Of a stretch of 64,000 bases of DNA, positions 2,211 through 64,000 are shown one piece after another. The notes under the pieces are model-generated. The model saw only the letters and a program-made list of their open reading frames with translations. It did not search any database and was not told the DNA's origin. The translations under genes were made by a program, and so were the position numbers. The DNA comes from Rebecca billardiae RCC1528 (lineage: Eukaryota; Protista; Haptophyta): the NCBI GenBank assembly GCA_965240325.2, contig OZ251230.1, forward strand, positions 558,001 through 622,000, read 5' to 3'. Position 1 is the first letter of the stretch. Each line of letters opens with the position of its first letter.

Positions 2211-5200
2211 CTAGCACGTGCACTCAGGGCACACAAACTCGTCCCGGTCCGAGTAGCGTGAGACGTCGAGCCCGAGGCAGGAGCCGTGGTACCAGCGCTG
2301 GCACACGTCGCACGAGATCATCGCCTCGGCGTACTTGGTGCGGTCCCACACGCGCGCGCCGCCGTTGCAGATGCACATGCGCGGGCTCTCGCCCGCCGCC
2401 TTGCACGCGTGGTACTGGTGCGTGCGCAGCAGCTGCCGCGCCGCCTCCTCGCCGCTCTCGAGCGCGCCGTGCACGCACTGCGCCGCCACCTGCGCGCACG
2501 CCTCGCCGCCGAAGAAGAGGCGCGGGTGGTCGGCCGCGGGGCCCAGCCAGTCGGGCGCCTGCAGCTGCGCGCGCGTCTCCGCGCCGGAGCCTGCGCCGCG
2601 GGGACGGAAGCGGCGGCGCGCGGGGCGGGCCGCGTCGCGCGGGGCCGCTCAGCGCGCGTCGTCCCGGGCGCCGCGGCGCCGCTCTCGGCCGCGGCGGGCG
2701 CGCGGCCGTGGCGCGGGGCGCGCGCGCCGCGCACCGAGGGCAAGGAAGGAGTAGGAGCCTCTGCTGAAGGGCTCCGCCTCCCACCGCGTGACCACCGCCT
2801 CGAGCAGCCCGGGGATGCCGAGCTCGGCGGCGCCGCCGCCCTCGGCGCCGGCCGGTGGCGCGGTGCCGCCCGCCTCCGCCTCCGCGCCGCGGCCGGCGGA
2901 ACCGTTCGCAGCCCGCCGCGCGCCGGCCGGCGGGGAGGGCGTGCGCCGCGCGGCGGGGCGGCGCGGCGCCGAGCCCGCGCCGCGGCCGCGCGCGCGCGCG
3001 CCCGCCGCGCCCTCCTCCGGCTCCGGCTCCGGCTTCGCCTCCTTCGCCTCCGCAGCGGCGGCGGGCACGGCGGCGGCAGCCGCCTCCGCGCCGCCCGGCG
3101 CTCGCGGCTCTGGCTGCTGCGCAAACATGCGCCGCAGCAGTCCGTCCACCTCCGCCACCACCGCTGCGTCGCTCAGCCCGCCAAACCGGTCGGCAAACGG
3201 CGGGCCTGCGTGCGCGACGATCACGCCGTGCTTGCCGAACGCGTGCAGGTTGAGGAAGCGCACCTGCGCGCACGCACGCGCGGCGGCGGCGGCGGGGCGC
3301 GCGCGAGGCGCGCGTTGACTGCGCGCGCTCTCGGGCGCGTGGGCGCGGGCGGCGCGGCGGTGCGCGGGCGGGCGCGGCGCGCAGGCAGGGCACGCACTGC
3401 GCGCGCGCGCGCGCGGCGGCGCACCCGCGGGTCTGTGCACTGCAGGTAGGGCGTGGCGGGTGGCCAGAACGGCTGCGCATACTGCAGCACCACCTGCGCG
3501 CGCGACACGGCGCGCGGCGGCCGCTCCTCCGTCCTCAGTCAGCAGAGGCGGCGCGCGCGGCCGCCACGGCCGCGGCTTGGGCCGCCGCGCGTGCGAGTGC
3601 GCCGCCACCGCCACCGCACCTTGTTCTCGATGCCCACGCCCATCGCGTCGATGGCGGCGCGCTTGGGCGCGCACAGCGGCGGGTCGAAGGTGACTGTGTT
3701 CGACGGCAGCGGCTGCTGCAGCACGCCTGCGAGCGCGCGCACGGCGCAGGGCGCAGCGGCCGAGCGAGGCGCGCGCGCGCGTGATGGCGGGCGGCGCGGA
3801 GGCTGCGGCCGAGGCGGGCTGCGCGCGCGCGCGCGCGCCCGCGCGCCCGCGCGCCCGCCGCGCCCACGCGCACAGCGCACGCCCCCCACCGATGGGCAGT
3901 GTGCACACGACGTAGTCGCACTCGACAGCCGAGCCATCTGCCAGCAGCACGCGCGCGCACGCGGCCCCGTCCGCGCACGCGCCCGCACGCGCGGGCGCTG
4001 CTGCCGCCGCCTCCTCGCCGTCGCCCTCTGCGCCGCGCCGCGCGAGCTCGACGCGGCAGACTTGCGCGCCCAGCCTGTGCTCAATGCGCGCGGCGCACGC
4101 GCGCTCGCGCCGGCGGGCGTCGGCCGGGAGCTGCGCGCGGCGCGCGGCCGCCTCGGCGGCGCCGCTCGAGGCGCGAGCGCGCCGGGCGCGGCCCGCGCCG
4201 CCGCCGCCCTCGCCGCCGCCGCCGCCCTCGCCGCCCGCCGCGCCCGTCGGCACGCCGAGGGTGCGCAGCAGCAGCTGTGCGTACCCATCGGTCACGATGC
4301 CGTCGGACACGTCGCGGTCGTCCGCGCTGCTCGCGCCCGCGGCGGAGCGGCGGCCGCGCGGCGCGCGCTTGGCGCGCGCTGACGAGTCGGCGGCGGCCGG
4401 CTGCGCGCGGCGCCGCGCAGGTCGCGCCGCGCCGGCCGTGCGCGGGTGCGGGGGCGCGCGCGCGGACGCGGCCGGCGGCGGCGCGGTGCGCGCGTGCACC
4501 GTCGCCGCGCGCACGCCGCGCGCCTCCGCCATCACCGCCCGCTCCGACATCGGCGTCTCGCTGAGGTGCGGCCGCGCGCCGCCCAGCCGAATGCACACGC
4601 GCGCGAGCGCTGGGCCGGGGCCGCGCGGCGCGCGCGGCGCGGCGCGGCGCGGCGCGCTGCCCGGCGCGCGCGCGGACGGCGCCGGCTCGGGCGGCGCGCG
4701 CGGCGCGGCGGGCGCGCCGGCCGGCGGCGGCGGCGCGCGCTGCGAGCGCAGCAGCTCCAGCCTCGCGCGCACGCACGCCTCCCAGCTGGGCGCGAAGCGC
4801 AAGCGCGGCGGCGCCGAGGGCGGCGGCGCCGACGGCGCGGCCGCGGGGCGAGGCTCGGCCTCGCCGCCCGCCTCCGCCGCCTCCGCGCCGCCGCCCGCCT
4901 CTGCCGCGCCCGCCCGGCGCCACGCCGGAGCGGCGGCCAGCAGCCTGTGCCTCACGCTCAGCGCCCAGCTCGAGTCAAAGCGCACGCCGCTGCCCGCGCG
5001 GCCGCACAGCGCGCGCAGCTCGGCGGCTAGGCCAGGCATGGCGCACGCGCCGCGCGCCCACGCGCCGTGCAGCGGGCGTGGCGTGCGCAGGGGCGCCGCC
5101 CCGCGCAGCACGACGCGCACAGGCACGCGCAGCTCCTCCGCGGAGGCAGCGGCAGCCAGCGGCCCGCCGCCCATCGGCGCCGCGTCCGCCATCTCCGCGT

Positions 5201-8200
5201 CTGAGCCCGGGGCGTGTGTGGCAGAGGCGGCGCGTGCGGCCGGGCGCGCGCGACGATCGGCCGCACGCGCGGCGGCGGCGGGTGCTGCTGCATCGGCAGC
5301 TGCGTCGGCGGCGCCGGCTGCCGCGGCGTCGAGCGCGGCAAGTGCGCCGCCCTGCAAGCCCGCGCCAGCCGCCGGCGGTGCGCGGGTGGCGGCTGCGCGG
5401 CGCGGCGGCGGCGGCTGCGGCGGTGGCGCGGCCGGCGCCGGCGGCACGGCCGCCGATGCCTCGGCCGGCGCATGCGCGCCCAACCCCACGCCATCCGCCG
5501 CCGCCCCGTCGGCCTCGGCCGGCGGGTGGGACGCGGGCGCGGGGGCGGCGCTCGGTTCGGCCGCGGGCGCGCCGAGCGGCGCGCGCCGGCCAGCGTGCCG
5601 AGCGGAGCGCTTGCGCGGGCCGGGCGGCGCTGTGCCCGCGTGCCGCGCGCGCCCGGCGGCGGCGGCGGCGGCACCGCCGCTCGGCGCAGCACCAGCCGCC
5701 GCCGCCCCGCCCCCCGCCGCCGCCCCCGCCGCCGCCCCCGCCGCCGCCCCCGCCGCCGCCCCCGCCGCCCGCAGCTCCCGCCGCGCGCGCAGCACCGCGC
5801 CCTCGTCGACCTGCTCGATCAGAGCGTCCGCAGAGAGCTCGTGCAGCCGCGCGTTGTAGCCCCAGACGAGGACGTACGCGCTGCGCAGCAGCAGCAGCTC
5901 GAGGTCGGAGGGCGCCAGCCGCGGCGGCTCGCACAGCGCGACGGGCAGCAGCGCGTCGCACAGCGCGCCCACCGAGGTTCGAGCCCACGCGCCGCACGCT
6001 GCGCCGCCCGCGCCGCCCGCGCCGCCGCCCGCGCCGCCCGCGCCGCCGCCCGCGCCGCCGCCCGCGCCGCCCGCGTAGCCCGCGGCGGGCGCGGCCGCGG
6101 CCGCGCCGAAGCGGAGCGGGAAGGTGGGCGGCGGCGAGGCGCGGCCGCGCGCGCATGGCGGCGCGCACGGCGAGGGCGGCGGCGAGGCGCGCCGCGGCGG
6201 CGACGCCGGCGGCGACGCCGGCGGCGACGGCGTCCGCTCTCGCTTCAGAGCGCCCGCGCTCGCGCCGCCGGCCGCGCCGCGCGCCGCGCGCGCGCGCGGC
6301 GGCGCGTGCAGCGAGCGCAGCAGCTCGACCGCGTCCTCCCAGCAGTGGCTGCCCAGCGCGCCGACCGCCGCGCCGCGCGCCTCCGCCGCGCCGCCGCGCA
6401 GCACCCGCGCGTGCACAAGCGGAGACGGCGGCGCGCCCGCCCGGCGCGCTCGCTCCTCGCACTCGACCAGCGCGGCGCGCGAGCCCACCAGCACGACGGA
6501 CACGTCGTCGAGGAGGGTGGCGGGGGGCGGCGCGGAGGGGGGCAGCGGCGCGGGGGGTCGAGGGGAGCGCCCGGCCGCGCCGAGGCCGCTCGCGCCGCCG
6601 CTGCCCGCCGTGGCACACGAGCCCGCGCAATGCGCGCGCGGCGGCGCCGGCTGCGCGCGCGCCGACGGCGGCGACGGCGGCGGCACGCTCGGCGCGACTC
6701 GAGCCGGCGGCGCCGGCGAGGCAGCCGCCGCCGCGTGCGGAGCCGCTGCCGGTAGCGTCGGCGCGCCCGGCGGCGCGCGCGGCGCGCCCGCGGATCCCGG
6801 CTGCGCGCGCGCAACGGCTGTCGCGCCCGCCACCACCGCAGGCCGCGCCGCGCCCGGCGCGCGCGCGGCGCGCGGCCGGGCGCGCGCGCCGCTGCCCGCG
6901 GCGGGCGCGGCCGCGCGGTCGCGCGCGCCCGGCAGCGGCGCAGCCCCGCGCGGCGCGGTCGGGAGCGCCGCCGGCTGCGCGGGGCCGCAGCGGGGCGGCG
7001 CGCTTGCGCATCGCCTCGGCGGCGGGCGCGGTGGCGCGGCAACAGAAGCTGACGCGTCGTGCGCGGCCGCGGTGCGTGGCGCTGCCGCGTGCGTGCGCGC
7101 CGGCTGCGGCGGTGCGGGCCCGGCGGCGGCCGCCCAGCTGTGCGGCGGCGCTGCGGCGGCGTGCCGCAGCGCACCCGCCGCCGCTGCCGCCGGCGGCGGC
7201 GGCGCGCAGCCCGGCGGCCGCGCGTGCGCGAGCGCGTGGCTGTGCGCCGGCACCGCCACGCGCGGCAGGTGCGCGGCGGCGCGTGCGCCTTCGGCCTGCT
7301 GCTGGGCTGCGCCCCGCTGCTGCTGCCCAGGGGCGTTGGAGCCCTCCGCCGCCGCCATGGCGAGGATCGCCGTGAGCGCCGCCTCGCGCTCGGAGGCGGG
7401 CAGCAAGCCGAGCACCGCGCTCAGCGAGCGCTCGGCCGCCGCCTGCTCCGCGGCCAAGCGCTCGGCGGCAGCGCGCACCTCCCGCTGAGCCGAGGGCGCG
7501 CCGCCCGCGCCGCCCGCGCCGCCCGCGCCGCCCGCGCCGCCCGCGCCGCCCGCGCCGCCCGCGCCGCCCGCGCCGCCCGCGCCGCCCGCGCCGCCCGCGC
7601 CGTGCGAGCTCGGTACGCCGCTGCCGCGCATCAGCAGGCCGGCGGCGCTCGGCGGCCAGGCCGCCGCCTCGGCGTGCGCCGCGCGCGCGCACTCATCCGG
7701 CGCGCGCGCGTGCGCGCACACCGCCGGCGGCGCCCGCTGGCCGCTCGAATGAGCGGCCGCCACGCTCGCAGGCGCGTGCTCGCACGCGCCGCGTGCGCCG
7801 GCCGCGCCGACGGCGGCAGACGACGGGCGCGCGCACGGGAGCGGCTGCGGCTGCGCCGCGCCGCCGCTGCACCACGCCGCGTGCGCGCCCTCGCAGCGCG
7901 CTCGGCTGAGCAATGGCACCGTCGCCGGCAGCGCGCGTGCGCGCGCGCCGCACAGCACGGGCGTGCGCGCGTGCTGCGCGCCACCGCGCAGGTGCGCACT
8001 CACTGCCGCGGCGTGGGCGCTAAGCGGGGGCGGCTGCGGCTGCTGCTGCCGCTGCTGCTGCCGCTGCTGCTGCTGCTGCGGCTGCGGCTGCTGCTGCGGC
8101 TGCTGCGGCTGCTGCTGCTGCGGCTGCGGCGGCTGCTGCTGCTGCGGCGGCCGCGGCTGCTGCTGCGCGGCTGCGCCCGCAGCGCTCGCGCGACACGCCG

Positions 8201-10187
8201 CCCAGCGCCAAGGCTCGCCGTCGTCGCCCTCCGCCGGAGGCGCGTGCGCCGCCTGCTCCGCCGGCGGCGCGTCCGCGGCGGCGCCGCTGCCGCGCCGCTC
8301 GGCGCCCGGCGAGGGTGCAGGTGCGTCCGCGAGCGCGGCGGGCGGCGTCACGCTCGGCGGCGCGGCAGCCGCCGAGCGCTTGGCGCAGCCGCCGCCGGGC
8401 GCGGCCGAGGCCGCGTGCGCGCGGCGCTTCGCCGCGCCCGCGGCCCGCCTGGCCCCGCCCGCGCCGCCCGCGCGCGTCTGCGCCCCCTCAGGCGAGAGCA
8501 AGACATGAATGTGCATGCCCGCGCGCCAGCTCTCTGGCAGCATCAGCGCGCGCCGCTGCGGCGCGCCCGCGGGCGACCACCACAGCTCCACCCAGCAGCC
8601 GGGCTCCGCGTCGTCGGGGACGTGGGCGACCAGGGACAGGGCGCGCGGCGGCGTCGGGTGCAGCTGCAGCAGCGCGGCGCGCGCCGCCGCGAGGCCCTGA
8701 TCCGCGCCCGCCTCCTCCGCCTCCTCCGCGTCCGCTGGCGCGTCCGCGTCCGCGGACGCGGGCGCGGACACGTCCGCTCGATCGACGTCGGCGCGCTGAG
8801 TGCCCTCGGCGGCGCCGCCGTCGGCAGCCGGCGCGCGCGGCGGCGTGAGCTTCCGCCGCTTGGGCGCGCCGCCGCCCTCGCGCAGCGGGCTCGCCGGACT
8901 CCGCCCCGCCGCCGCCGCCGCCGCCGCCTCGCCAACCGCCGCCCCGTCCGCCCCCGTCGCGGCCGAGGCCGCGGGCTCCGCTGTCGGCCTGAGCGCCGGC
9001 AGCAGGGCGCGCGTGCTGGAGCTGCGCCGCGCCGTGGGGAGCGGCGGCGGCGGCAGCCCGAGCGCGCGCGCCGCGTGCGCGCGCGCGACCACACCGTCGA
9101 CCAGCTGGCGCACGCGCCGCAGGATCTCAAAGCTGCGCTGGACCGCCTGCGCTCGGCGGCGCCACAGGGCGCGCGGCGACGGGGGCGGGGGCGAGCGCGC
9201 GTCGGGCGGGGCGTCGGCGCATCGCGCGCGTCGGCGTCCGCGCGCATCGGCCGGGCGCGCCGCGCGCACCTTGGGCGGCACGACCGCCCCCGGCGGCGCG
9301 CCTGGCCTGAGGTCATAGTACGTGCAGCCCTCCGCCCACGCGCGCGAGTAGCCGCCGCGCCGCTGGTCGACGCGCGCGCCGAGCGACGCGGCCATGCGGT
9401 AGATCGGATTGTACTGCGAGCAGCCGTGGACGAAGGAGGCGCCGAGGTCGACGCGCGCGCCGGAGCGGAGGGAGACGGTGTGCACGCGCCCGCCCAGTCG
9501 GCTGCGCGCCTCAAGCACCACCACACGGCTCGCGCCGCCGAGCGCGAGCGCGCGCGCGGCGGCGAGGCCGGCGGGACCGCCGCCGATCACGGCCACCGTG
9601 AGGGCGTCTCTCGCGCGCTGCACGCGCCCCGCCTGGTTGCGCATGCCGCACGTGGAGCACACGGCGGCGGCAGCGGCGGCGGCGGCGCAGTGCGCGTGCA
9701 CCGTCGCGGCCGAGACAGAGCACGCGCACATCCACGCCTCCCGCTCCAGTGAGGGCACCGGCACGCCGCACAGTCGACACGCGCGCGAGCCCGCCGCCGC
9801 GCCCTCGGCCGCCGCGGGCCCGCCGTCGTCGCCGCCGCCGCGGCGCCGGCCGCGCTCGGCCGCGGCGAGCGCCTCGTCTTGCGACGAGTCCGTGTCGTCC
9901 GAGCCCTCAGCCGCGCCGCCGCCCGCGCCGCCGCCGCCGCCCGGCGCCGCCGCCGCGAGCTCGCGCTCCAGCCGCCGGCGCGCGCGCGCGGCGCGCAAGT
10001 CCGCGGCTGAGACGCAGCACAGCCCCTCGATGGCCGCGTCAGCGTCCATCGCCTCCTCGTCCGCCGCGCTCCACAGCCGGCACGCGCGGCCGGTGCGCCG
10101 TGCGCGGCGCAGCCGCCGCGCGTGCGGGTGCTGCGCCGAGATCGGCGGCCCGTCCTCCTCGTCCTCCTCGTCCTCCGCGTCCGACGA

Positions 10188-10239
<52 letters not shown>

Positions 10240-11114
10240 GTGTCGGAGGCCTCGCGCGAGGAGCCCTCGGCGGAAGAGGCGGGGGAGGCGGAGGCAGACT
10301 CGTCGCTGCTGCTCTCGCGCGCACCTGCGCGCGCCGGTCGGCGGCGCGAGCGCGCGCTCGCCCGCACGGCGGCACGCGCTCGGCTGCCGCTCCCGCCGCC
10401 GCCGCTGCCGCCGCCACCGCTGCCGCCGCCGCCGCCGCTGCCGCCACCCTTTGCCGCCGCGCGCGCGCGCGCGCGCGCAGGCGTCGCGGGCGGCGGCTCA
10501 GCGTCCGGCTTGTGGCCGCGCGCGGTGGCCATCGCCCGCCCGGCCCAGCCCGCGCTCGCCCGCTCGTCCGCGAGTGCGAGCAGGGCGGAGTGCTCCGCCT
10601 CGACCAGCTCGGCGAGCCGCGGCGGCCTGCGCACCGCGCGCCTCCGGCCGCCCTCGGCGTGCGCGCCCTCGAGCTGCTCGTGCGCGCGGATGGCCTCGGT
10701 GGCCTCGTCCTCGTTGAGGTCCTCCTCGTCGCCGTCGTCGTGCACCGCGTGCCACAGCGCGAGCGTGTCTTCCTCCTCCGCGCTCGCGGACACGGCCGCG
10801 GGCAGCCAGCGTGTGATCGTCGCCCGCACTTCGCTCGGCCCGCTCCCGGTGTCAAAATAGCGGACGATGCGGCGGCCGATCCACGCGTGGCCCTCCTCGC
10901 ACCAGCGCGCCTCGCCCGCCGCACTGTGCTCGCCCCGCGTGTGCGCCGTCCACGCCTCGGCCATCCGCGCGTACACGAGGCCGGTCGAGGGGGAGACCCA
11001 CACGCGCCGAGAGACGCCCTCGTCGCGCCGCGTGCTCACGCGCCAGCCGGCCTGGACGAGGATGCGCGCGCGCTGCGCGGCGCCCGGCTCGTAGCCGCCG
11101 CCTGCGTCCGCCAT
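2211..11114 (-). CDS. giant multi-exon FAD-dependent amine oxidase (LSD1/KDM1/PAO family) with N-terminal Tudor-like and RING-variant modules and C-terminal PHD finger
   Basis: Oxidase motifs: VAVIGGGPAGLAAA..VVVLEARSRLGGRVHT..VDLGASFVHG; CDYVVCTLPIGVLQ; AIDAMGVGIENKV; TRWEAEPFSRGSYS; LFFGGEA..CVHGALESG. PHD: CIC..MISCDVCQRWYHGSCLG..FVCPEC, stop at 2211. Tudor-like: WIGRRIVRYF..WHAVHDDGDEEDL. At least five GT-AG introns, e.g. 9147-9269. Confidence 0.85.
7497..7601. repeat. 9-bp coding tandem repeat GCGCCGCCC (Gly-Ala-Gly)n inside the oxidase insertion
   Basis: About 11 direct copies. Poly-Q (about 8035-8165) and poly-D (about 10197-10238) tracts also lie in this gene. Confidence 0.9.
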
Positions 11115-11418
11115 CGGCGCAACCCACCCGGCCGTGAGCGGCAGCCCTCGCCCAACCCCAAACCTTCTTGATGGTGACCCATCGCCGCCGCCTCTCGTTG
11201 GTCAAGCAGACCGGACCTCGCCGCCGAGCCGGACTGTAGGAGGTAGCGGTTTTAGCTGCTGCTACTTTAACTGTCGTGTGTACCGAAAGGATTGAAAGGA
11301 ATGAACACGCGACCGAATCGGACTGCAAGCTACTGTTTCCAGGTCTCTCTTCGGAGAGCGTGCGCTGAAGGATGGCGCGGCAACCTGCCACCGTGAGCCT
11401 TACGCACGTTAAAACAAA

Positions 11419-50364: not shown

Positions 50365-50395
50365 GCCAGTCGACACGGGCGGTCCGTTAATAGTC

Positions 50396-50722
<327 letters not shown>

Positions 50723-50876
50723 GTACCGCGGTACAGGCTTCTGTCTCACGGAGTCCGTAGCGCTAAGCGCTGCAATGATGCGCTGCATGATGATGACCGC
50801 TTCGACGGAGCTATACTGTATATGCTGATGACTAACTGCTACACTACTCTGTAGCTTATTAGTACCGTCGATGAAT

Positions 50877-52546: not shown

Positions 52547-54108
52547 TCACGGACGGCTCCACCTCGTGCGCGCGCGGCGCCGCCTCGCCCGCGTCGGTGC
52601 CGCACGGCGAGCCGCCCGAGAGCGTGCTGAGCGGCCAGACGCAGGCGTGCGCGCGCGGCGCGTGCGCGCGCAAAAGGTCCTGCAGCTGGCGCGCGCACTG
52701 CGCGAGCGCGGGCTTCGACGCCTGCCGATGACGCTGCGACATGCTCTTGGCGGAGCGGCCGTCGAACTGCATGAAGAGCACGGCGAGCGCGTCGTCCACC
52801 GGCAGGCACAGTTCGCTCGCGTGCTCGTCGAGCACGGCGAGCAGCCGCGCGCGGCCCTCGGCCCCGAGCGCGCGCTGCAGCGCCGCCGGCCACACGCGCG
52901 CCTCGCGCGGCGCGCCGCGTGCGCCCGGCGCGCTCGCCACCGAGTCGGTGGCGCGCGGCCGCTTGCCGGCGGCTGGGCGGCGAGGCCGCTCGACGCTCTT
53001 GGCCTGCAGACGCTCGAGCGCGTCGGCGCACTCGCCGCGCAGCAGGTTGTGCAGCGCCCAGCGATGCGAGCGGCACTGCTGGGCCTTGAAGTCGGCGAGG
53101 AGCGCGTGGCCGCCCGGCGGCGCGCCGACCACGCCCGTCTCCAACACCGCGAGGCTCTGCTCGAGCGAGAAGAGTTGCGACTGCGAGCGCGAGCTGATGA
53201 GCGCGCACACGCGCGCATGCGCCCCGGCACCGAGAACCTCCAGCAGCAACGTGGCCGGCGGCGGCGAGATGGCGCTCCCGTCAGCCTCCGTCTGCGTGGT
53301 GGATGGACCCCGCGTCGTCGAATCCGACCGCGTCAGGTGGGGCGCGCAACGGTCAGCGGCTGCGGCGCCATCGCGCGTGCTCGGGGCACGGTGCGCGTCG
53401 TTCCGCGTGGCAGCAGTCGCGCCCGAGGCGGATGGAGCAGCGCCGCCGCGTGCGCTCGAGGCGCGGTGTAAGTCCAGGCGCGTAGCGGCGGCGGGTGCGT
53501 GCTCCGCCAGCAGCGCGCGCAGGCGAGTGCGGTGCCTGTGGCACTGGTCCAGCGAGACATTGCTCAGCGCGGGATGCTGAGCGGTCGCGCCGTAGCTCAG
53601 CCCGCTCTCGAGCACGGCGAGGCTCTGCTCGGCCGAGAAGAGCGTGGACTCGGAGCGCGTCGTGATGACGCTGAGCACGTCAGCCAGCCCGTCCGCGCCC
53701 AGCACCTCGGCCAGCGATGCGCCGCCTCCGCGCACGCGCGCGCTGAGCTGGCTGCTGCCGTCCGCGTGCGCGCCGGGGCGCGCCGCCAAACTTGGCGCCA
53801 AGGGCCCGCCCTGCTCGCCAGCTCCGCACGGTCGCGCCGTGTCCGCCTCACTCGCCGCACGATCACGATGCGGCGCGCCGACGTGCGCGCACGGCACCGC
53901 GTACAGCACGTCCGCCGCCACGGGCGCTGGGCGGCCCACGCGCGAGGCGCAGCCTGCCGCAGAGCAGCAGCCCGAGGCTGCCCGCGAGGGCTGCCCGGCA
54001 GAGGTCGACGCGATGCGGTCGTGCGACGGCGGCAGCTGCGGCGGCGGCGTCGACGCGAGCTCGGCGCCGGCGATCGCACCCGGCGCGTACGCCATCGGCG
54101 TGTAGAAG
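52547..54108 (-). mobile_element. copy A: fragment of the 5' coding region of the Helitron2-like element
   Basis: Collinear with 62470-64000. Homology stops abruptly at 52547, abutting an unrelated plus-strand ORF. Confidence 0.9.
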
Positions 54109-57100
54109 AGCGCGCTGGCTCTCGGTCGTGATTGGAGGAGCTAGCCACCTAGCCGGTGCATGTAACGAAATCCCTTTATTATCGTGAAGGATCTCCACCG
54201 TGCAGAGATGTCCAAGGCGGACTTCATTAGCCCAAGACCGCCCAGTCGCTGGCGTACCTGGTTGAGTACGTTAATGAATAACTAAGCGCAAGCGCCGTCA
54301 CAGCAGCCGAGCGCGCCACGCCCGCCACTTCGGTGGCATGCGCATCCGTGTGCACGACGTCGGGGGCACAGCCGGGCGTGTAGCGCAGCTCGGGGAGCAT
54401 GTGCCGCGCGGGCTCGCTCGGCTCCTGCGCGCCGGCCAGCGCCTCGAGCAGCGCGCGCATCTGCGCAGAGCGCGCCACGGGCGCCTGCAGTGCCAGGGCC
54501 TGCGACCACTCGCGTCTCGCGCGCTGTTCGCGCCGCAGGCTTGCCGCGTCGGAGCGCTCGGCGTCGCCAAGGCCGGCGGCGGGGGCGGCGTGCTCGTTGC
54601 TGGACGGGGCGGGCGGCTCGCCCTCGGGGCTGGCCTCCTCTGCCTCGTCGAGCTCGACGTCGCCGCCGGCAGCCTCGGTGTCGAGAGCGCCGCTGCTGAC
54701 GTCGTCGGCATCGACGGGCGCTGAATCGACGTCGGCCGCGTCAGCGTCTGCGTCCGCGCGTGCAGTTTGGTCGTCCGCCGGGGCGGCGACGGCGGGTTGC
54801 GATGAGAGCGACTGATCGCTCTCGAGCGAGCTGCGCCCGTGCACGCCCTCTGCTGCCACCTCGTTCACGCGCGCACGGTGCAGCCCGACGAGCGCAGGCG
54901 CCAGCAGTGTCGGATACGCCCGCGTGAGCTCAGCGATGGCCGCCTCGGACCGGCGGCGAGGTGGACCGACGCCACGCAGAGGCACACGGGCGCGCAGGGC
55001 CGCGGCGAGGAACTCCCGTGCCTCCTGCTCGCCCACCATCGAGGCGAGTCGCGCAAATGACCCCGCACGGGCGCGCGAGGCGGCGGCCATCGTGTAATGA
55101 TGGTGCTGCTAGCACCGCAGGTCAGCAGCATTTTCGGAAAAGAAAATCCCCACCCCTTGCCCACCCGCAATTCTCATCCTGGCCGATACACACCCTTACC
55201 GCTCTGCGCATGGGGAACCCATGCTCGCAGAGCGGCCGGGGCGAATCTCAGGGGCCTGAGGCGGTCCCGGACGCGCGCCCCGCGGCCACACCTGAGGGTG
55301 CGGGCGGGCTCTTCGATCATGTTGGTGAGCTCTCCGCCATCGGGGCGCGCTTCATTGCGCCGCCTCGCCTCGCGTACGGCGTTCCCGTCGTGCTCGCACT
55401 GACAAGGCTGAGCAGAGCGTAGAGAGTGCCATCATGATTGCATTCGGTTCCAACTTGCTCGCCAGCCACTTCCAGCCAGGTGCGCGCGGCTTGGGAGTAG
55501 ACGATTAGTTCCGTGTGCCCGGGCTCGTCGTGACACCGGCATGCCGATCCCTCCCCAGCCGAGATGTCAGAGCGCGTGCGCACAGGCAGTCACAGGCAGT
55601 GCGCACTGGTAGCCAAGTGGACGCGTGTGAGCGACGACAAGCCACGACAAGAAAACGGCCGCATCCAACCTTCTCACATACCACTAGACCACCGCGCAGA
55701 ATGCGTCTGAGCCCGCCCATTCCCGCCCATAACGAGTTACAGCGGCTCGATTGTGAGGCGGGTGCAAAGGCGGCGGGTGAAAGCGAGCCCCGCGCGGGCG
55801 GCGAGAGAGACGCGCGTGCATAGACCTGATGCGGGAGTGCCCGAACAACGTGAAGGTGCGTCCATCTTCCAAGCGCGCGACCGGTCCGACACCGCGCCAC
55901 GCCAAACGAGCACCACGCGTGTCGCCCCCCAGCGCCGGCCACGCGTCCCGAGGCGCTGCCATGTTTCGTCACGGGCCCGATCTCTGAGGTTAGCCCCGGC
56001 CGCTCTGCGAGCGTGGTTCCACCACGCGCAGAGCGGCCGGGCACCGTGTGTATCGGCCAGATTCTCATCATTGCTTGGGGCGACCGCCGAGCAGCGCCGC
56101 GCGCTCGACGGCGTGCGCGCAGCAGTGGAGTTCGCGGACGGTGATGGGGCAGAAGGCGCACGACGCGAGGCGTGGGTCGCGAGCGTGCGCGCCGCGTGCT
56201 CGGCGTTGCGCGTGCCCGACGCTCGCACGCTCGTCTCCACCGACGACGTCGCGCTGCTCGACGTGGCGATGATGACCGTCGCGCGCGCTTGGCTGCTCCG
56301 ACACGGCCGCGCGCCGCCACCGCATCTGCTCGAGGCACCAGCCGCGGCTGAGCTGCGAGCGCTCTCCGCTGTCGCTCGCGCCTCGAAGGCGGAATCGGGC
56401 TGGCGAGACGTGGCGTTCGCCGTCGCTCACGCGCGGCTACGACGCCAGCGAGCCGCGCGCGCCATCCAACGGCGCGCACGCCCGCTCTGGCGCATCCGCG
56501 GCACCGCCGCTGGCGCGAGTGTGGAGTTGGGCCGGGCGCCGCGGCGCGTGGGCGCGGTGCGCGGTGCGCTCGGCATCGTCTGCATGGAGCGGCGGCGCGC
56601 GCGGCTGATGGCCGACGAGGAGATGCTCATGCCCGGTGGTGACTACTTCTACACGCCGATGGCGTACGCGCCGGGTGCGATCGCCGGCGCCGAGCTCGCG
56701 TCGACGCCGCCGCCGCAGCTGCCGCCGTCGCACGACCGCATCGCGTCGACCTCTGCCGGGCAGCCCTCGCGGGCAGCCTCGGGCTGCTGCTCTGCGGCAG
56801 GCTGCGCCTCGCGCGTGGGCCGCCCAGCGCCCGTGGCGGCGGACGTGCTGTACGCGGTGCCGTGCGCGCACGTCGGCGCGCCGCATCGTGATCGTGCGGC
56901 GAGTGAGGCGGACACGGCGCGACCGTGCGGAGCTGGCGAGCAGGGCGGGCCCTTGGCGCCAAGTTTGGCGGCGCGCCCCGGCGCGCACGCGGACGGCAGC
57001 AGCCAGCTCAGCGCGCGCGTGCGCGGAGGCGGCGCATCGCTGGCCGAGGTGCTGGGCGCGGACGGGCTGGCTGACGTGCTCAGCGTCATCACGACGCGCT

Positions 57101-57517
57101 CCGAGTCCACGCTCTTCTCGGCCGAGCAGAGCCTCGCCGTGCTCGAGAGCGGGCTGAGCTACGGCGCGACCGCTCAGCATCCCGCGCTGAGCAATGTCTC
57201 GCTGGACCAGTGCCACAGGCACCGCACTCGCCTGCGCGCGCTGCTGGCGGAGCACGCACCCGCCGCCGCTACGCGCCTGGACTTACACCGCGCCTCGAGC
57301 GCACGCGGCGGCGCTGCTCCATCCGCCTCGGGCGCGACTGCTGCCACGCGGAACGACGCGCACCGTGCCCCGAGCACGCGCGATGGCGCCGCAGCCGCTG
57401 ACCGTTGCGCGCCCCACCTGACGCGGTCGGATTCGACGACGCGGGGTCCATCCACCACGCAGACGGAGGCTGACGGGAGCGCCATCTCGCCGCCGCCGGC
57501 CACGTTGCTGCTGGAGG
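53237..57517. repeat. 872-bp inverted repeat (arms 53237-54108 and 56646-57517; spacer 2537 bp)
   Basis: Arm ends mapped by eye; equal lengths and identical translations. Confidence 0.93.
54227..55090 (-). CDS. hypothetical protein (287 aa) inside the inverted-repeat spacer
   Basis: ATG-initiated ORF with an acidic central region; family not recognised. Confidence 0.45.
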   Translation of the reverse strand: MAAASRARAGSFARLASMVGEQEAREFLAAALRARVPLRGVGPPRRRSEAAIAELTRAYPTLLAPALVGLHRARVNEVAAEGVHGRSSLESDQSLSSQPAVAAPADDQTARADADADAADVDSAPVDADDVSSGALDTEAAGGDVELDEAEEASPEGEPPAPSSNEHAAPAAGLGDAERSDAASLRREQRARREWSQALALQAPVARSAQMRALLEALAGAQEPSEPARHMLPELRYTPGCAPDVVHTDAHATEVAGVARSAAVTALALSYSLTYSTRYASDWAVLG

Positions 57518-57558
57518 GTACCCATCGCCGTGCGTGGTCGGCAGGCGGAAGTCGGTGA
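55753..57558 (+). pseudogene. copy B: N-terminal part of the Helitron2-like ORF, truncated at 57517
   Basis: Open frame runs into MAYAPGAIAG... 56646-57517 is the reverse complement of 53237-54108. An IQ-like AARAIQRRAR lies upstream of the shared part. Confidence 0.75.
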
Positions 57559-60500
57559 TGATGCCAATCTCCTTCGCGCGCGCGACGACGAAGAGCGAGC
57601 CGGGCGTGGGCGGCGTGCGCGAGGTCGGCTCGCGGTACGGCAGGATCTCCTCGTCCGCCGCGGCGCCCGCCTCGATCGCGAGCGCGTTCTCGCGCTCGAG
57701 CTGCTGCCGCGCGCGCGTGGCCGCCTCCGCGCCCAACGGAGGGACGACGCGCTCGGCGGGGGTGACGTCCTGCCGTCGGCGCGCGTACTCGTCCGCGCGC
57801 AGCAGGCAGGGCAACGCGTCGGCGCGCTGCGCGTCGCTGAGCTGCGCGTACGGCTTGACCTGGTACCGCGCGTGGAACGCCGGGTACGTGAAGCTCTGCA
57901 GCACGCGCGGCCGGCGCTGGTAGGCCTCGATCGGCCCATCGCTCCATCGCGTGTCGCCGGCGTCGACAGCGCCGCCACGTTTGAGGCCGCGCATGCGGCG
58001 CTCGGGCAGCGCGGTCGGCAGCCGCATCGCGCCCTCGCCGCGAGCGATCGCCAGCCCGAGCGTGCGCGTCACCATCTCGGGCGCGGCGACCACGCGGTTG
58101 GTGAAGCGCAGCTGCCGGCTGAGCGCCGAGCGTCCGGCGCGCCTGCGCATGCCGCTCGTCTCGCGCGTCGCGCCCGTGCCCTCCGGCTTGGCGATGTACT
58201 TGGCGATGTACTTGAGGAAGACGACGCCGCGCACGGCCTGCACGTTGATTGCCGCGCCCCATGCGGCGAGCCAGAGCGGGACGTACGGCGAGATGCGCCG
58301 ATCCTCCTCGCGCTCGCAGGTGTACACGAAGCGGCCGGTTTGCGCGTTGAGAGAGTTCGGCCGCAAGCCGGCCGCGCCGACCGTGAGCGGGAACGGGTAC
58401 GCGCTCTTGCAACGCCGCAGCGTCGCGCCCTTCTTGCCGCGGGTGCACTTGGGCACGCACTCGTGCGTCTGCCACCTGCGCACGCACTCGCGCCAAGCGT
58501 GCTGCGCCGCCGTGCGCGGCTCGCGCGGCAGGCAGTGCGTGATGGCGGCGATGCCCGGCGGCGGCTCGTCATCGGCGCGCGGCCGCGGCGGCGCCCCCTC
58601 GGCCTCGCCCATCTCGGCGTCGCCGGCCGCGTCGTCAGCGCCGTCGGCGCGGTCGGCAGTCGGTTCTTCGACCCACACCGCCATGTGCACGTGCAGCGAG
58701 CCGCGCGCCTGGTCCTCGTGGCGCAGAAACGTGTGCGTGATCTTGCCGAGCGGCGAGAGCACGCCTCGACTCAGGTAGCGCTTGAGAAACAGGTCGAGCC
58801 GGTGGTGGTAGTGCCGCGTCGCCTCGACGTACGCCTTTTCGTGGTGGTGGCCCCAGCAGGCGTTCGCAAGGTCGCACCAGCCCGACTCGTTCGCGGTGAG
58901 CGTCACAAAGTATTGCGGTGTGCGGTACTGCACCGCCATCGCCATCAGCTGGTGGTAGCGCTCGCGCCAGTAGCGCAAACTCCCCACGACGGCGCTGCCG
59001 ACGCGCCGCCCAAACGTCTCCTCCGTGGCGATGTGCTGCGCAGCGCCGGGCGCGGCGCCGTCGAGCGCCTGCGCGCGCTCGCGCACCTCGCCATCGAGCT
59101 TCGCCAGCTGCTCGGGCGTCAGCTTCGCCGCCACGTCGCCCTGCGCGAGCGTCACGCCGCCCGCGTGCATCGCGCGCTTGTTCGTCCGCTGATGCAGATA
59201 CATGAGCACCTCGGGCGCGCGCGCGAGCTGCACGTTGGGCGACGTGAGGCGAATGCGCTTGTAGTGGCCGAAGGAGACGTGACGGCGCTTGCGCGCGCCA
59301 TATCGGTCGCTGCCGAGGCAGCCGGGCGGCGGCGGCGCGTCGTCCGGATCCCCGTCCGAAGCCTCGTCGTCGGCGCGCCCTCCGGCCGACGCCGCCCAAA
59401 GCAGCGCCGCGTCGTCATCGTCGGCCGCGCCCTCGGCGCCGCGCTCGGGCTCGCGCACGTCGGGCTCGCGCCAACCGCCGAGGCCGTACCGGTACCACGC
59501 GGTGAGCACGGCCGTATCCGCTGTGCCGTCGTACGCGCCCGTCGCCGGCTCGCCCACCGCGCTGAAGGGCGCCGGGCGCGGCGGGCGGCGCTGCGCCTCG
59601 GCCGCCGCCGCCTCGGCGCGCGAGACCACCGTGCCGAGCGTCTGGTGGCGAAGCGCGTTGTGCGCGAGCAGCGCCTGCGGGTCAGGCTCGACGCCCGACT
59701 CGAGCACGCCCTCGAACGCGAAGGGTACGCCGTCGCCGCTCGGTCGCGGCGGTGGCGGCGCCGCCGGGTCGACCGCCTCCGCCTCCGCATCGGCGAGCGT
59801 CGCGTCCTCATAGTCGGCGATTGGCAGGCCGCTCGCGGCGAGCTGGTCGCCGAGCGCGCCCTCGGCCGGCGGGAACGGGTCTCGTAGGTTGCGCAGCAGC
59901 TCGCGCTCGAGGCACACGAGCATGTCGCGCACGAGCGGGTGCGTGCGCTTCAGCTCGTCCAGCGCGGCGCGCAGCCGGCGATCTCGATCGGTGCACGGCA
60001 TGCCCTCGCGACGAGAGGCCAGGATGACGTCCGACCAGCCCGCAAAGTCAGCGGGCAGCAGCAACCCGCCGCCGCCCATCGAGTCGTAGCCGTTGCCCAT
60101 CCTGCCCGCATAGCCTCGAAAGAGCGCGGACTCCATCTTCAGCACGGACAGCGCGAGCCGCTCCTCGACGGTGAGCGCAGCGAGGGCGGGCGGCAGCGGC
60201 ACGCCCAGGCCGGTGGGCTTGAGCTCGCCCTCGATCGAGGTGAAGCCGTCGCACAGGTCGAGGCGCGACGTCGACGTCGTGTGCACCGCAAACGGCTCGG
60301 TCGGCAGCTTGGTGGCCTGCGCGCACGGCGTGCACGACCACGCGGTGTGGTACTGCCGCCGCGAACGGCGCGTGTCGTAGCTGTTCTGCAGAAGCATGCG
60401 CGCCGCATACGCGCGCTCCTTGCCCTCCGCCTCCTCGTCCGGCGCAAAGTTGAAGAGGTCGGCGGCGACCATGGTGTGCTCGCGCTCGAGCTCGCGGATG

Positions 60501-63500
60501 AACGGCTGGTACACGCGGTACGCGCGCAGCGACTCGAGCGAGGTGGCGCCGACGACGGTGACGCGCCTGGCCTCCTTCGCGTACATCATCGTGCCGCAGC
60601 TGAAGCACACGCGGCACGGCCGATCGTCGTACATCGCGAGCGTCTCCGCGAGCACCCCCCACTGCTTCTCGTCGAGGTCGAGCTGCATGCTCCCGCCGAG
60701 CTGTTCGCGCTCGGCGGCGAGCGCGCGCACGGTGGAGAGGTGCTCGAGGCCCGACCCCACCGCCGCGTAGTACGCCGCGTGCGCCGAGCGGCGCCGCACC
60801 GCGTAGAGCGACTGGTCGCCGATCGCGTACGTCGTCACGATCACCTCGGGCGCGAGGTTGAACAGGTCCGCGTCGGCGGCCGTGCTGTCGGGTGGCAGCT
60901 CGCGCATCGTCGTCCGTCCGGCGCCGTCGTGCGAGACGTGGACGAGACGCAGCGGAGGCACCGCGCTCGCGTTGGCCGCGTCGCCCCCTCCCGCCGCCGC
61001 GACCGCCGCCGAGAGCTCCGCCACGATCGCGCCGATGGTAGTGTCGGCCGTCACGTCCGCGACCGTGATCGCCTCGCGCGGCGCGGGCGACGCGAGGAAC
61101 TGATCGGCGTGGACGCACGCCTCGCACGCCGAGCACACCTCGAGCGCGGTCGTGGCGCACGACGCGGTCTCGCCGCGTCCGTGCGCGCCACCCGCGCCAG
61201 CGCGTCCCGAGCCGCCGCCGTCGCCGCCGACCGTCGGCACGCCGCGGTCGCCCGTCGCAGTGCGGTCGCTCGCGTCACCGCCGACTCCGCCGCCGCCTGC
61301 TGCCGCGCCCAACCCCGCACCGCTGGCGCCGCCGGCCGCCCCTGCGGCGCGGCCCTCCGCGCCGCAGCTGCGCGGCTCGGAGCCGTCGCTCGAGTCCCCG
61401 CCGCCCCCGCCGCCGCCCGCGGCCGCACCCGCGCCGCCGGCCGCCGCCGCGTTGCAGCGCGCCGCGCCCCCAACGCCCATCGCAGACCCGTCACCCGAGT
61501 CATCGTCGCCGTCTCCGCCGCCGCCCGCGGCCGCGCCGGTCGCGCTCGCGCTCACGGCGGGGCCGACGCGCAAAAGGCACCGGCGCGCGCAGCACGTGCA
61601 GTCACCAATCGTGTCGGCCGTGCACGCCGACAGGATGATCTGCTCCTGGACCACGGTGAACGGAAACTCGTACGGAATGGTCGCGCGCTGCCGGCGACGA
61701 TCGATGCGCGCGCCTGGCGCGTAGTGCGCGCCCGGCTCGAGCGGCGTCCACACGCCGTGCAGGAGGCGCGTGCGCGGGCGCGAGTAGTCGACGCGATCGA
61801 CGGCCTCGGGGGGCTGCGCCGTGTCGAACTCGACGCGCAGCAGCCGCAGCGCCTCCGCCCGGTGCGCCTCGGGCATCCCGGCCGTGGCCGCGCGCAGCGC
61901 GGCAGTCGCGCTCGGCAGCTCGCCCGTCTCGGCCTCACACAGGCGCGCGCGCTCGGCAGGATCGGCGCAGCGTCGGACGAGCTCGCGCAGCTCGTCGTCT
62001 GCGTCGGCGGGGAAGAGCGTCGCGAGCAGCCGCGGCTCGAGCCTGTCCACGACCTCCCGCAGCCGCAGCAGCCGCTCCTTGCACGCCCTCGGCGTCTTCC
62101 CCTCGAATGCGGGCCACGCGCGCTGCGGTGTCGCGTGCAGCACGTGAGCATACTGCGTCTGCAGCAGGCCGATGTCCTGCTCGATCGTCCACGACGAGTC
62201 GTTCTGCGTGTAGAATCGCAGGACGCGCTCGTCGTGCATGGTGCGCAGCGCGGCGTGCAAGCGCCCGAACGCGCGCTCGGGCGAGTCCTCCGGCGAGAGC
62301 TCGCCCTGCGGCTCGGTGCCCGGCTGCCGCTCCCCCTGCGCGCCGCGCGCCGCCTGCGCGCCGCGCGCCGCGTGGGCGTCGACGCCCTCACAGCCGGTGG
62401 GCAACGAGGCCTCGGCCGTGTCGCCGAGCTGCGCGGCGGCGGGGCTGGTGGGGTCGACGTCCATGTCGGTCACGGACGGCTCCACCTCGTGCGCGCGCGG
62501 CGCCGCCTCGCCCGCGTCGGTGCCGCACGGCGAGCCGCCCGAGAGCGTGCTGAGCGGCCAGACGCAGGCGTGCGCGCGCGGCGCGTGCGCGCGCAAAAGG
62601 TCCTGCAGCTGGCGCGCGCACTGCGCGAGCGCGGGCTTCGACGCCTGCCGATGACGTTGCGACATGCTCTTGGCGGAGCGGCCGTCGAACTGCATGAAGA
62701 GCACGGCGAGCGCGTCGTCCACCGGCAGGCACAGCTCGCTCGCGTGCTCGTCGAGCACGGAGTGCAGCTGCGCGCGGCCCTCGGCCCCGAGCGCGCGCTG
62801 CAGAGCCTTGGGCCACGCGTCGCGTGCGCCCGGCGCGCTCGCCACCGAGTCGGCGGCGCGCGGCCGCTTGCCGGCGGCGGGGCGGCGAGGAAGCTCGACG
62901 CTCTTGGCCTGCAGACGCTCGAGCGCGTCGGCGCATTCGCCGCGCAGCAGGTTGTGCAGCGCCCAGCGATGCGACCGGCACTGCTGGGGCTTGAGGTCCG
63001 CGAGGAGCGCATGGCCGCCCGGCGGCGCGCCGACCACACCCGTCTCCAACACCGCGAGGCTCTGCTCGAGCGAGAAGAGCTGGGACTGCGAGCGCGAGCT
63101 GATGAGCGCGCACACGCGCGCATGCGCCTGGGCGCCGAGGACCTCCAGCAGCAACGTGGCCGGCGGCGACGATATGGCGCTCCCGTCAGCCGCCGCCTGC
63201 GTGGTGGATGGACGCCGCGTCGTCGACTCCGACCGCGTCAGGTGGGGCGCGCGGTGGTCAGCAGCTGCGGCGCCATCGCGCGTGCTCGGGGCACGGTGTG
63301 CGTCGGTCTGCGGGGCAGCCGTCGCAGCCGATACGGATGGAGCAGCGCCGCCGCGTGCGCTTGAAGCGCGGTGCGCGTCGAGCCGCTGGACGGCGGTGGG
63401 TGCGTGCTTCCCCAGCAGCGCGCGCAGGCGGTGACGATGCCTGCGGATCTGGTCTGGCGCGACACGGCTCAGCGCGGGATGCTCAGCGGCCGCGCCGTAG

Positions 63501-64000
63501 CCCAGCCCGGTCTCGAGCACGGCGAGGCTCTGCTCGACCGAGAAGTTCGAGGACTTGACGCGCGCCACGATGATATCGCGGACGGTTGCCAATCCGTCCA
63601 CGCCCAGCATCGCTGCCAGCGATGCGCCGCCGCCGCGCGCGCGCGCGTTGAGCCAGTCGCCGTCCACGTGCGCGCCGGGCCGCGCCACCAAACTTGGCGC
63701 CAAGTGCCCGCCCTGCTCGCCAGCTCCGCACGGTGGCGCCGTGTCCGCCTCGCTCGCCGCACGATCACGATGCGGTGCGCCAACGTGCGCGCACGGCACC
63801 GCGTACAGCGCGTGCGCCGCCACGGGCGCTGGGCGGCCCACGCGCGCGGCGCAGCCTGCCGCAGAGCAGCAGCCCGAGGCTGCCCGCGAGTGCTGCCCGG
63901 CAGAGGTTGACGCGATGCGGTCGTGCGACGGCGGCAGCTGCGGCGGCGGCGTCGAAGCGGGCTCGGCGCCGGCGATCGCACCCGGCGCGTACGCCATCGG
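57518..64000 (-). mobile_element. Helitron2/Helentron-type rolling-circle transposon (copy C), HUH Rep ORF truncated before the helicase
   Basis: GSLRYWRERYHQLMAM..PQYFVTLTANESGWCDL (motif 1); EDQARGSLHVHMAVW (HUH); QTHECVPKC..CKSAYP; ISPYVPLWLAAWGAAINVQ..YIAKYIAKPE (YxxxY); RVVAAPE; YQRRP. Upstream: CxxC pairs, PPALAALTVEE and LRAALDELKRTHPL (DUF6570-like). The element continues past the window end. Confidence 0.92.

Follow-up and report, generated by a model that had tools for sequence, protein, structure and literature searches.

The stretch of DNA analysed here (the window) comprises 64,000 nucleotides of the haptophyte Rebecca billardiae RCC1528 (positions 558,001 to 622,000 of contig OZ251230.1 in GenBank assembly GCA_965240325.2), and its right-hand end carries part of a Helitron-like, rolling-circle transposable element. 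The minus strand from 57269 to 63997 is a single open reading frame (ORF) of 2242 codons whose ATG lies three bases inside the window edge. The sequence of the element itself (copy A) reaches only to 57518, at about aa 2157 (...THGDGY); beyond it, the last 85 codons of the ORF run antisense across an inverted copy of the 5′ part of the same element. The element-derived portion joins a predicted HUH Rep endonuclease to a very long N-terminal extension with helical units and a predicted ubiquitin-like domain (UBL); its features, and two further partial copies (B and C), are listed in Table 1.

Table 1. Coordinates of the element copies in the window and of the features along copy A
Feature	Residues (aa)	Window positions	Strand	Remarks
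Element-derived part of the ORF (copy A)	1 to ~2157	57518..63997	-	N-terminal extension and Rep, without helicase
Unit U1	117-215	63353..63649	-	core NFSVEQSLAVL; strongly diverged between copies A and B
Unit U2	272-371	62885..63184	-	core LFSLEQSLAVL ... QQCRSHRW
Unit U3	390-482	62552..62830	-	core LPVDDALAVL; weaker copy of the unit
Unit U4	572-668	61994..62284	-	WTIEQDIGLL ... GKTPRACKERLLRL; most Myb/SANT-like; counterparts in relatives
Conserved linker ("seg")	705-795	61613..61885	-	directly before the UBL in relatives
Low-complexity insert, G/A/D-rich	797-975 (~180)	61073..61609	-	absent from relatives
Predicted UBL (beta-grasp)	976-1066	60800..61072	-	AlphaFold2 model and conservation; without C-terminal Gly-Gly
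Conserved Cys motifs of the clade, CRVCFSCG ... CTPC		60308..60625	-	likely zinc-finger-like region; from the alignment of relatives
Conserved "LTVEERLALSVLKM" region upstream of Rep		59873..60265	-	where HLE2 elements carry DUF6570
Predicted HUH Rep endonuclease domain	1573-1945	58163..59281	-	motif I, HVH, YIAKY
Copy B, 5′ fragment only	1-509	52547..54108	-	DNA 91% identical to the first 1.55 kb of copy A
Copy C, inverted fragment of the 5′ coding part		56646..57517	+	100% identical to 53237-54108; adjoins and truncates copy A

The open frame, its Rep domain and its truncation

Because the G+C content of the ORF region is 72–78%, open frames are by themselves weak proof of coding here, and the composition of the three codon positions is decisive. 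Over aa 1–2157 the G+C fractions at the first, second and third codon positions (GC1, GC2 and GC3) are 0.75, 0.58 and 0.91, respectively; GC3 ranges from 0.84 to 0.99 among the individual modules and falls to 0.75 in the final 85 codons. Stop codons are expected at about 0.014 per codon in DNA of 75% G+C, and a frame of 2157 codons is far beyond chance. Several long antisense ORFs overlap the frame, and those on the plus strand (for example 59939–63364, 1141 aa) were rejected as antisense artefacts of the high G+C content, since the codon-position G+C fits the minus strand. Public sequencing runs gave contigs of only 150–280 bp, which show diverged variants and are uninformative on splicing and expression. 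One run, labelled as a second organism, holds a 282-bp contig identical to window positions 60012–60293 together with diverged variants of the U4 region, so the family or a very close relative exists in that source.

As judged from its sequence, the window encodes a Helitron-like HUH Rep that looks intact and has two catalytic tyrosines. Pfam Helitron_like_N matches aa 1664–1772 with an E-value of 1.6e-19, and the Rep motifs follow in order: motif I (YFVTLT, aa 1696), the HUH motif (HVH, aa 1769) and the two-tyrosine motif (YIAKYIAKP, aa 1930). They align with those of Helraiser, the bat Helitron1 transposase (7LCC), which was the sole solved structure found by sequence; the motif order is the same in both, YIAKYIAK here corresponding to KYLFKYIYK in Helraiser, although the similarity is very weak (E 6e-4, 21 bits). 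These results bear out a preliminary description of this DNA, which had placed at these coordinates an open frame of about 2150 codons with the Rep motifs in order and had taken it for a Helitron-like HUH Rep with a long and unusual N-terminal extension.

Copies B and C were detected by self-comparison of the window. All three copies begin at the same ATG and keep the frame. Copy C and the corresponding part of copy B form a perfect inverted repeat of 872 bp whose arms (53237–54108 and 56646–57517) are about 2.5 kb apart; the identity begins 13 bp upstream of the shared ATG and stops exactly at the junction with copy A. This junction (57517/57518) coincides with the end of homology to the relatives described below, and the helicase of copy A is missing because the inverted 5′ fragment was joined at this point; tblastn found no helicase anywhere in the window. 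The window copy is a truncated Helitron member and cannot be autonomous; the preliminary description mentions neither the missing helicase nor the rearrangement. The 100% identity of the two arms suggests that the rearrangement is very recent, or possibly that it is an assembly artefact. Helitron-like elements have defined termini, with a 3′ hairpin and either no target-site duplication or an atypical one; neither terminus of this element is in the window, its 5′ end being beyond the window edge and its 3′ part deleted.

The overall dN/dS values (non-synonymous and synonymous divergence) between copies A and B are 0.075/0.116, which are not low. Unit U1 (63353–63649 versus 53460–53750) has a dN of 0.24 and a dS of 0.23, and its flanks have a dN of 0.02–0.03 and a dS of 0.05–0.14. 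Since the divergence of U1 is raised at synonymous as well as non-synonymous sites, it suggests an exchange with a more distant member of the family, through recombination or gene conversion, and not positive selection on U1 only.

Relatives and the helical units of the N-terminal extension

An exhaustive HMMER search with aa 951–2150 against 1.84 billion representatives gave 710 matches, 196 of them below 1e-10. The best are 40–47% identical to the query, and none of the close ones is longer than 1079 aa; all of these are fragments, found in marine metagenomes, Tara data, Logan assemblies and one NCBI assembly. A word-index protein search returned no match with the Rep region and only two proteins with an alignment of relatives (A2); its index is probably swamped by low-complexity words, so that such blanks mean little.

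The metagenome relatives share one order of parts at 25–31% identity, namely a helical unit, the conserved linker "seg", the UBL, a CxxC region and Rep, in some followed by a PIF1 helicase. The UBL segment, followed by CxxC...CxxC motifs and an LTxxERLxLSVxKM block, is common to the 10 relatives of alignments A2 and A3, whose identity to the window protein is 22–31% apart from one at 72% (P0089). L001 is an 11.6-kb metagenome contig collinear with window aa 971–1367, 1421–1511 and 1596–2050 that then continues into a PIF1 helicase, which is also present in P0002; L004 (GCA_902585555.1) and L005 are likewise collinear with the window protein. Upstream of the UBL the relatives have "seg" preceded by one or two helical units. 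The collinearity of L001 and its continuation into PIF1 indicate that the front end was already present in the ancestor of the clade and did not arise by a fusion at this locus, and the recurrence of U4, "seg" and the UBL in this order in the relatives does not agree with a host gene fused only at this locus, the outcome that the preliminary description had named as fatal to its reading. Element boundaries were not obtained from the metagenome loci, among which L001, L002 and L003 are one locus. The ORFs of L001 downstream of its helicase (6429–11218), which are 353, 250 and 512 aa long, lack any Pfam match; they may be additional accessory genes of the element, or host genes that flank it.

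The cores of the four helical units are located at aa 151, 307, 424 and 603. U1 and U2 are clear duplicates (41% identity across 82 aa, pairwise BLASTP 4.5e-15), and the pairwise BLASTP values of U1 with U3 and with U4 are 2e-3 and 1e-3. Of the "about four related units" of the preliminary description three (U1–U3) are solid and the fourth is marginal, being missed by a hidden Markov model (HMM) built from U1–U3. All four have a skeleton that resembles a Myb/SANT repeat, [WF]-[ST]-x-E-Q-x-[LI]-x-[VL]-L followed by P-x-[QA]-C-[RK]-x-(H)-R-[WL]-x-L, for example WTIEQDIGLL...GKTPRACKERLLRL in U4 and FSLEQSLAVL...KPQQCRSHRWALHNLL in U2. The Myb consensus is W-[ST]-x2-E-[DE]-x2-L ... R-[ST]-x2-Q-C-[RK]-x-R-W. 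No counterpart of U1–U3 was detected in any relative, and from these comparisons U1–U3 look like a lineage-specific expansion and U4 like the ancestral unit shared with the relatives.

The units are likely to be degenerate Myb/SANT-type helix-turn-helix (HTH) domains and probably not a new fold. Unit profiles compared with 177,635 PDB sequences placed v-Myb at rank 1–2 (E 0.28–0.38). A model of U4 is all helical (predicted local distance difference test, pLDDT, 72; predicted template modelling score, pTM, 0.60), and in a wide VIA comparison it reached Z 4.0–4.7 to the SANT/Myb domains of DMAP1, ISWI, TRF2 and CHD1, covering most of these targets, with SANT/Myb domains making up about 15 of the top 35 rows. 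A shape search of the ESM Atlas with the same model gave SANT/SLIDE clusters at template modelling (TM) scores of 0.52–0.55, and Myb families dominate (0.68–0.80) the language-model (Atlas) features of U4. In the relative L005 the position equivalent to U4 carries AWTKEEDAIL; its six best PDB sequences are all Myb, and its Pfam Myb_DNA-binding match has an E-value of 0.046 (14 bits, below the cut-off of 24.4). The units share with the Myb/SANT domains of c-Myb R2R3, TRF1/2 and the ISWI/CHD1 SANT-SLIDE region a W/F-[ST]-x-E-[EQ]-x2-L motif in helix 1, a [KR]-x-P-x2-C-[KR]-x-R motif in helix 3 and predicted three-helix cores in tandem; they differ in their length of about 85–100 aa with an extra N-terminal helix, and they fall below the thresholds of Pfam and structural significance. 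PIF/Harbinger transposons, with their Myb-like proteins, are a precedent for Myb-type DNA binding in a DNA transposon, except that the Myb-like units here are fused to a rolling-circle Rep and do not form a separate protein alongside a DDE transposase.

A number of observations weigh against the Myb/SANT assignment, and most of them also favour the units being a new repeat unrelated to Myb/SANT, such as a protein–protein interaction or oligomerisation module in which the motifs are coincidental. None of the Myb/SANT signals is individually significant: Pfam, run on the modules one at a time, gave no match on the window's own units, Foldseek with the U4 model found nothing significant in the PDB or the Swiss-Prot part of the AlphaFold database, and the VIA Z for that model is at most 4.8, in a range that the tool rates as uninformative for helical folds. 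The language-model features of U2 are not dominated by Myb and point weakly to winged HTH and HNH_repeat, and since the U1–U3 HMM misses U4 the alignment behind the U4 model (A4) mixes weakly related sequences. A word-index search of aa 110–800 also returned no homologues, with the same reservation about its index as above. The signals are, however, mutually concordant, in that independent weak methods all place Myb/SANT first or nearly so, and a relative has a near-canonical WTKEEDAIL helix at the same position, so that we give an unrelated repeat perhaps a chance in five or slightly better. Less probable still is that the leader and U1–U3 come from a host gene, a fragment of which was captured by this element lineage and joined to it in frame, and have no role in transposition. 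Gene capture by Helitrons is known (PMC11417382), and such an origin would fit the lack of U1–U3 in the relatives and the divergence between copies A and B, which is not low overall. Against it, U1–U3 share the motif skeleton of the clade-ancestral U4, which internal duplication explains better, the three window copies keep the same ATG and frame, and the GC3 of this part is coding-like (0.88).

The predicted ubiquitin-like domain and the insert before it

Modelling and conservation together make it very probable that aa 976–1066 have a ubiquitin-like (beta-grasp) fold. Conservation of the segment extends to at least 10 relatives, and the pattern in 10 of them tracks the order of the elements of ubiquitin: a strand, a helix with T-T-[VI]-x2-[VIL], an L-x-L strand, a D-L-[FY]-N turn and a V-V-T strand. 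An AlphaFold2 model of aa 968–1075, calculated from an 11-sequence alignment (A3), has a pLDDT of 74 (85–90 in the core blocks) and a pTM of 0.63. VIA re-alignment of this model reached Z values up to 6.8, with 209 chains at Z of at least 5; the top 50 are beta-grasp/ubiquitin-like only (Z 5.9–6.8) and typically superimpose 63–78 residues at 2.5–3.2 Å. The top ranks of a Foldseek search are mostly ubiquitin, archaeal ubiquitin, RA, FERM F1, Ring1B RAWUL and the UBLs of parkin and sacsin, with TM scores by target up to 0.58. The parallel with ubiquitin noticed in the preliminary description thus holds at the level of models and is accompanied by conservation in the relatives. Helraiser differs in this respect: 7LCC does not figure in the list of structural matches to the UBL model, and no equivalent UBL is evident in it.

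At its C-terminus the domain runs into ...VIVTTYAIGDQ, or VVT-x-LP in the relatives, and has no Gly-Gly; in the absence of a terminal Gly-Gly it would be an integral UBL and not a modifier. In this it resembles the integral UBLs of parkin, Rad23, USP7/USP11, Ring1B (RAWUL), FERM F1 and RA, as a predicted beta-grasp within a larger protein, and both the embedded position and the absent Gly-Gly are typical of UBLs that act as docking modules. It differs from them in having no sequence-level relationship (15–25% identity in structural alignments), in its unmodelled first strand and in its position between DNA-binding units, as we take U1–U4 to be, and a Rep nuclease, for which no described counterpart was found.

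The UBL assignment has weak points as well, and they are what would be expected if the fold had been produced by AlphaFold from too shallow an alignment and the segment were no more than a linker, conserved and of alpha/beta type, in the N-terminal domain of Helitrons. The model is based on 11 sequences only, and its pLDDT of 74 is accompanied by Foldseek E-values of only 0.27–0.8, among which unrelated folds (superoxide dismutase, gelsolin) are interspersed. The structural matches start at residue 9 of ubiquitin, so that the first beta strand is missing or lies upstream, and there is no Pfam ubiquitin match. We nevertheless consider an artefact improbable, since beta-grasp folds, covered over nearly their whole length, account for the entire VIA top 50 and for the majority of the better Foldseek matches and since the conserved pattern follows the ubiquitin order in 10 relatives. 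A comparable doubt attaches to the low-complexity insert that precedes the UBL, which could be an intron or a non-functional expansion that is open only because stops are rare at 78% G+C. The relatives lack it, its flanks are a short duplication of the first residues of the UBL (TADTIG at 61625–61605 and TADTTIG at 61051–61030), and its G/A-rich composition and high G+C content make an accidental 540-bp open frame plausible. Its GC3 (0.89) however matches the rest of the frame, no GT...AG pair that restores the frame was found across it (a result that neither supports nor excludes an intron), and in one relative (P0158/L005) a CxxC that resembles CSACEAC stands about 20 aa upstream of the UBL; an intron or expansion of this kind thus seems rather unlikely to us, if somewhat less so than an artefactual UBL.

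The two Cys clusters reported in the preliminary description, CTCCARRC (aa 800) and CSACEAC (aa 955), are present as sequences, at the start and near the end of the insert, respectively. They are not conserved zinc fingers. Because they bracket an insert that is absent from the relatives (the CxxC of P0158/L005 being the only one found before a UBL), they are not a family feature, and it is downstream of the UBL that the clade has its conserved Cys motifs.

Place among Helitron-like elements and proposed explanation

The HELIANO survey divides Helitron-like elements (HLEs) into HLE1 and HLE2 (Helitron2/Helentron) and found DUF6570, UCH, AP endonuclease and VTD almost exclusively in HLE2, OTU in both groups and Herpes_Helicase in association with HLE1 (PMC11417382). 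The terminal features that define Helitron2/HLE2 are short asymmetric terminal inverted repeats, hairpins at both ends and insertion at T|T (PMC3627910, PMC11417382). The window element resembles HLE2 (PMC3627910, PMC11417382) in its HUH Rep with two tyrosines, in having relatives that are fused to a PIF1-like helicase, and in its long N-terminal region, which has CxxC motifs and, at the position of DUF6570, an "LTxxERLxLS" block. The marker-bearing distant RepHels of the library likewise carry HLE2-type markers or OTU: among 17 distant long RepHels scanned, four have DUF6570, UCH, AP endonuclease or a herpes-tegument deubiquitinase (DUB), two have OTU and two have weak Herpes_Helicase matches.

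In other respects the element differs from HLE2. In a tree of the Rep core (76 rows, IQ-TREE in quick mode, with no HLE1 reference among the rows) the window falls into a 21-member clade with 100% support (SH-aLRT), and a branch of 1.03 substitutions per site parts this clade from all other hits, including the bearers of DUF6570, UCH and VTD. Pfam DUF6570 was undetected both in window aa 1076–1566 (E of at most 10) and in 10 relatives of the clade (E of at most 0.05), where an equivalent conserved block is nevertheless present. AP endonuclease (Exo_endo_phos) is not in the window, and the L001 ORFs downstream of the helicase have no Pfam match to it. Neither PMC6213432 nor PMC8788227 gives a usable residue-level rule that separates the Rep motifs of Helitron1 and Helitron2. 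Taken together the sequence comparisons hint at an HLE2 affinity, but DUF6570 is undetected, the tree lacks an HLE1 reference and the termini lie outside the window; the "Helitron2-type" label of the preliminary description is therefore only putative. That the element and its marine relatives form a deep, undescribed Helitron-like branch outside or basal to HLE1 and HLE2, with Myb-type DNA-binding units and a UBL built into the transposase and with the UBL coupling transposition to the host ubiquitin/SUMO system, on which other Helitrons act by way of acquired deubiquitinases, seems to us improbable.

The explanation we favour, and consider probable, is that the locus holds what rearrangement has left of a Helitron-like element, a non-autonomous remnant in which a RepHel front with Myb-like units and a UBL, ancestral to the clade, has been kept and the PIF1 helicase lost. 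The single long ORF would encode the N-terminal three quarters of a RepHel transposase, with a domain order of a short leader, four Myb/SANT-type HTH-like units, a linker, an integral UBL, a CxxC...CxxC region and the HUH Rep. In intact copies Rep would nick and covalently bind the transposon end and the helicase would unwind it, as shown for Helraiser. We infer that the Myb-like array may give sequence- or chromatin-specific DNA binding and that the UBL may be a docking surface through which the transposase meets a partner of the host or of the element, possibly a member of the ubiquitin/SUMO system.

In the literature searched we found no paper that combines a RepHel with Myb, SANT or ubiquitin-like domains, and neither is among the 20 accessory domains of HELIANO (PMC11417382); this agrees with the preliminary description, which did not recognise the repeat module or the UBL as known accessories. 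The repeat module itself is probably of degenerate Myb/SANT type and not a new fold. Pfam is blind to both domains here, and a Pfam-based survey would miss them. Other Helitrons have repeatedly acquired OTU, UCH, VTD/herpes-tegument-like DUBs and Ulp1 (PMC9741609, PMC11417382). A clade with a conserved UBL in its transposase gives a second, independent handle on this link between Helitrons and the ubiquitin system; the Myb-like array is a candidate for end or target recognition by a rolling-circle transposase. Since the clade is otherwise seen only as marine metagenome fragments, this genome may be the best source of full-length and possibly active copies.

Two further features of the window lie away from copy A. 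A long compound (TG)n/(TA)n microsatellite occupies 50387–50788, in an AT-richer island (G+C 0.44–0.50) between G+C-rich blocks, and from 4001 to 8000 the G+C content is 0.85–0.87 across several kb, which is extreme even within this window.

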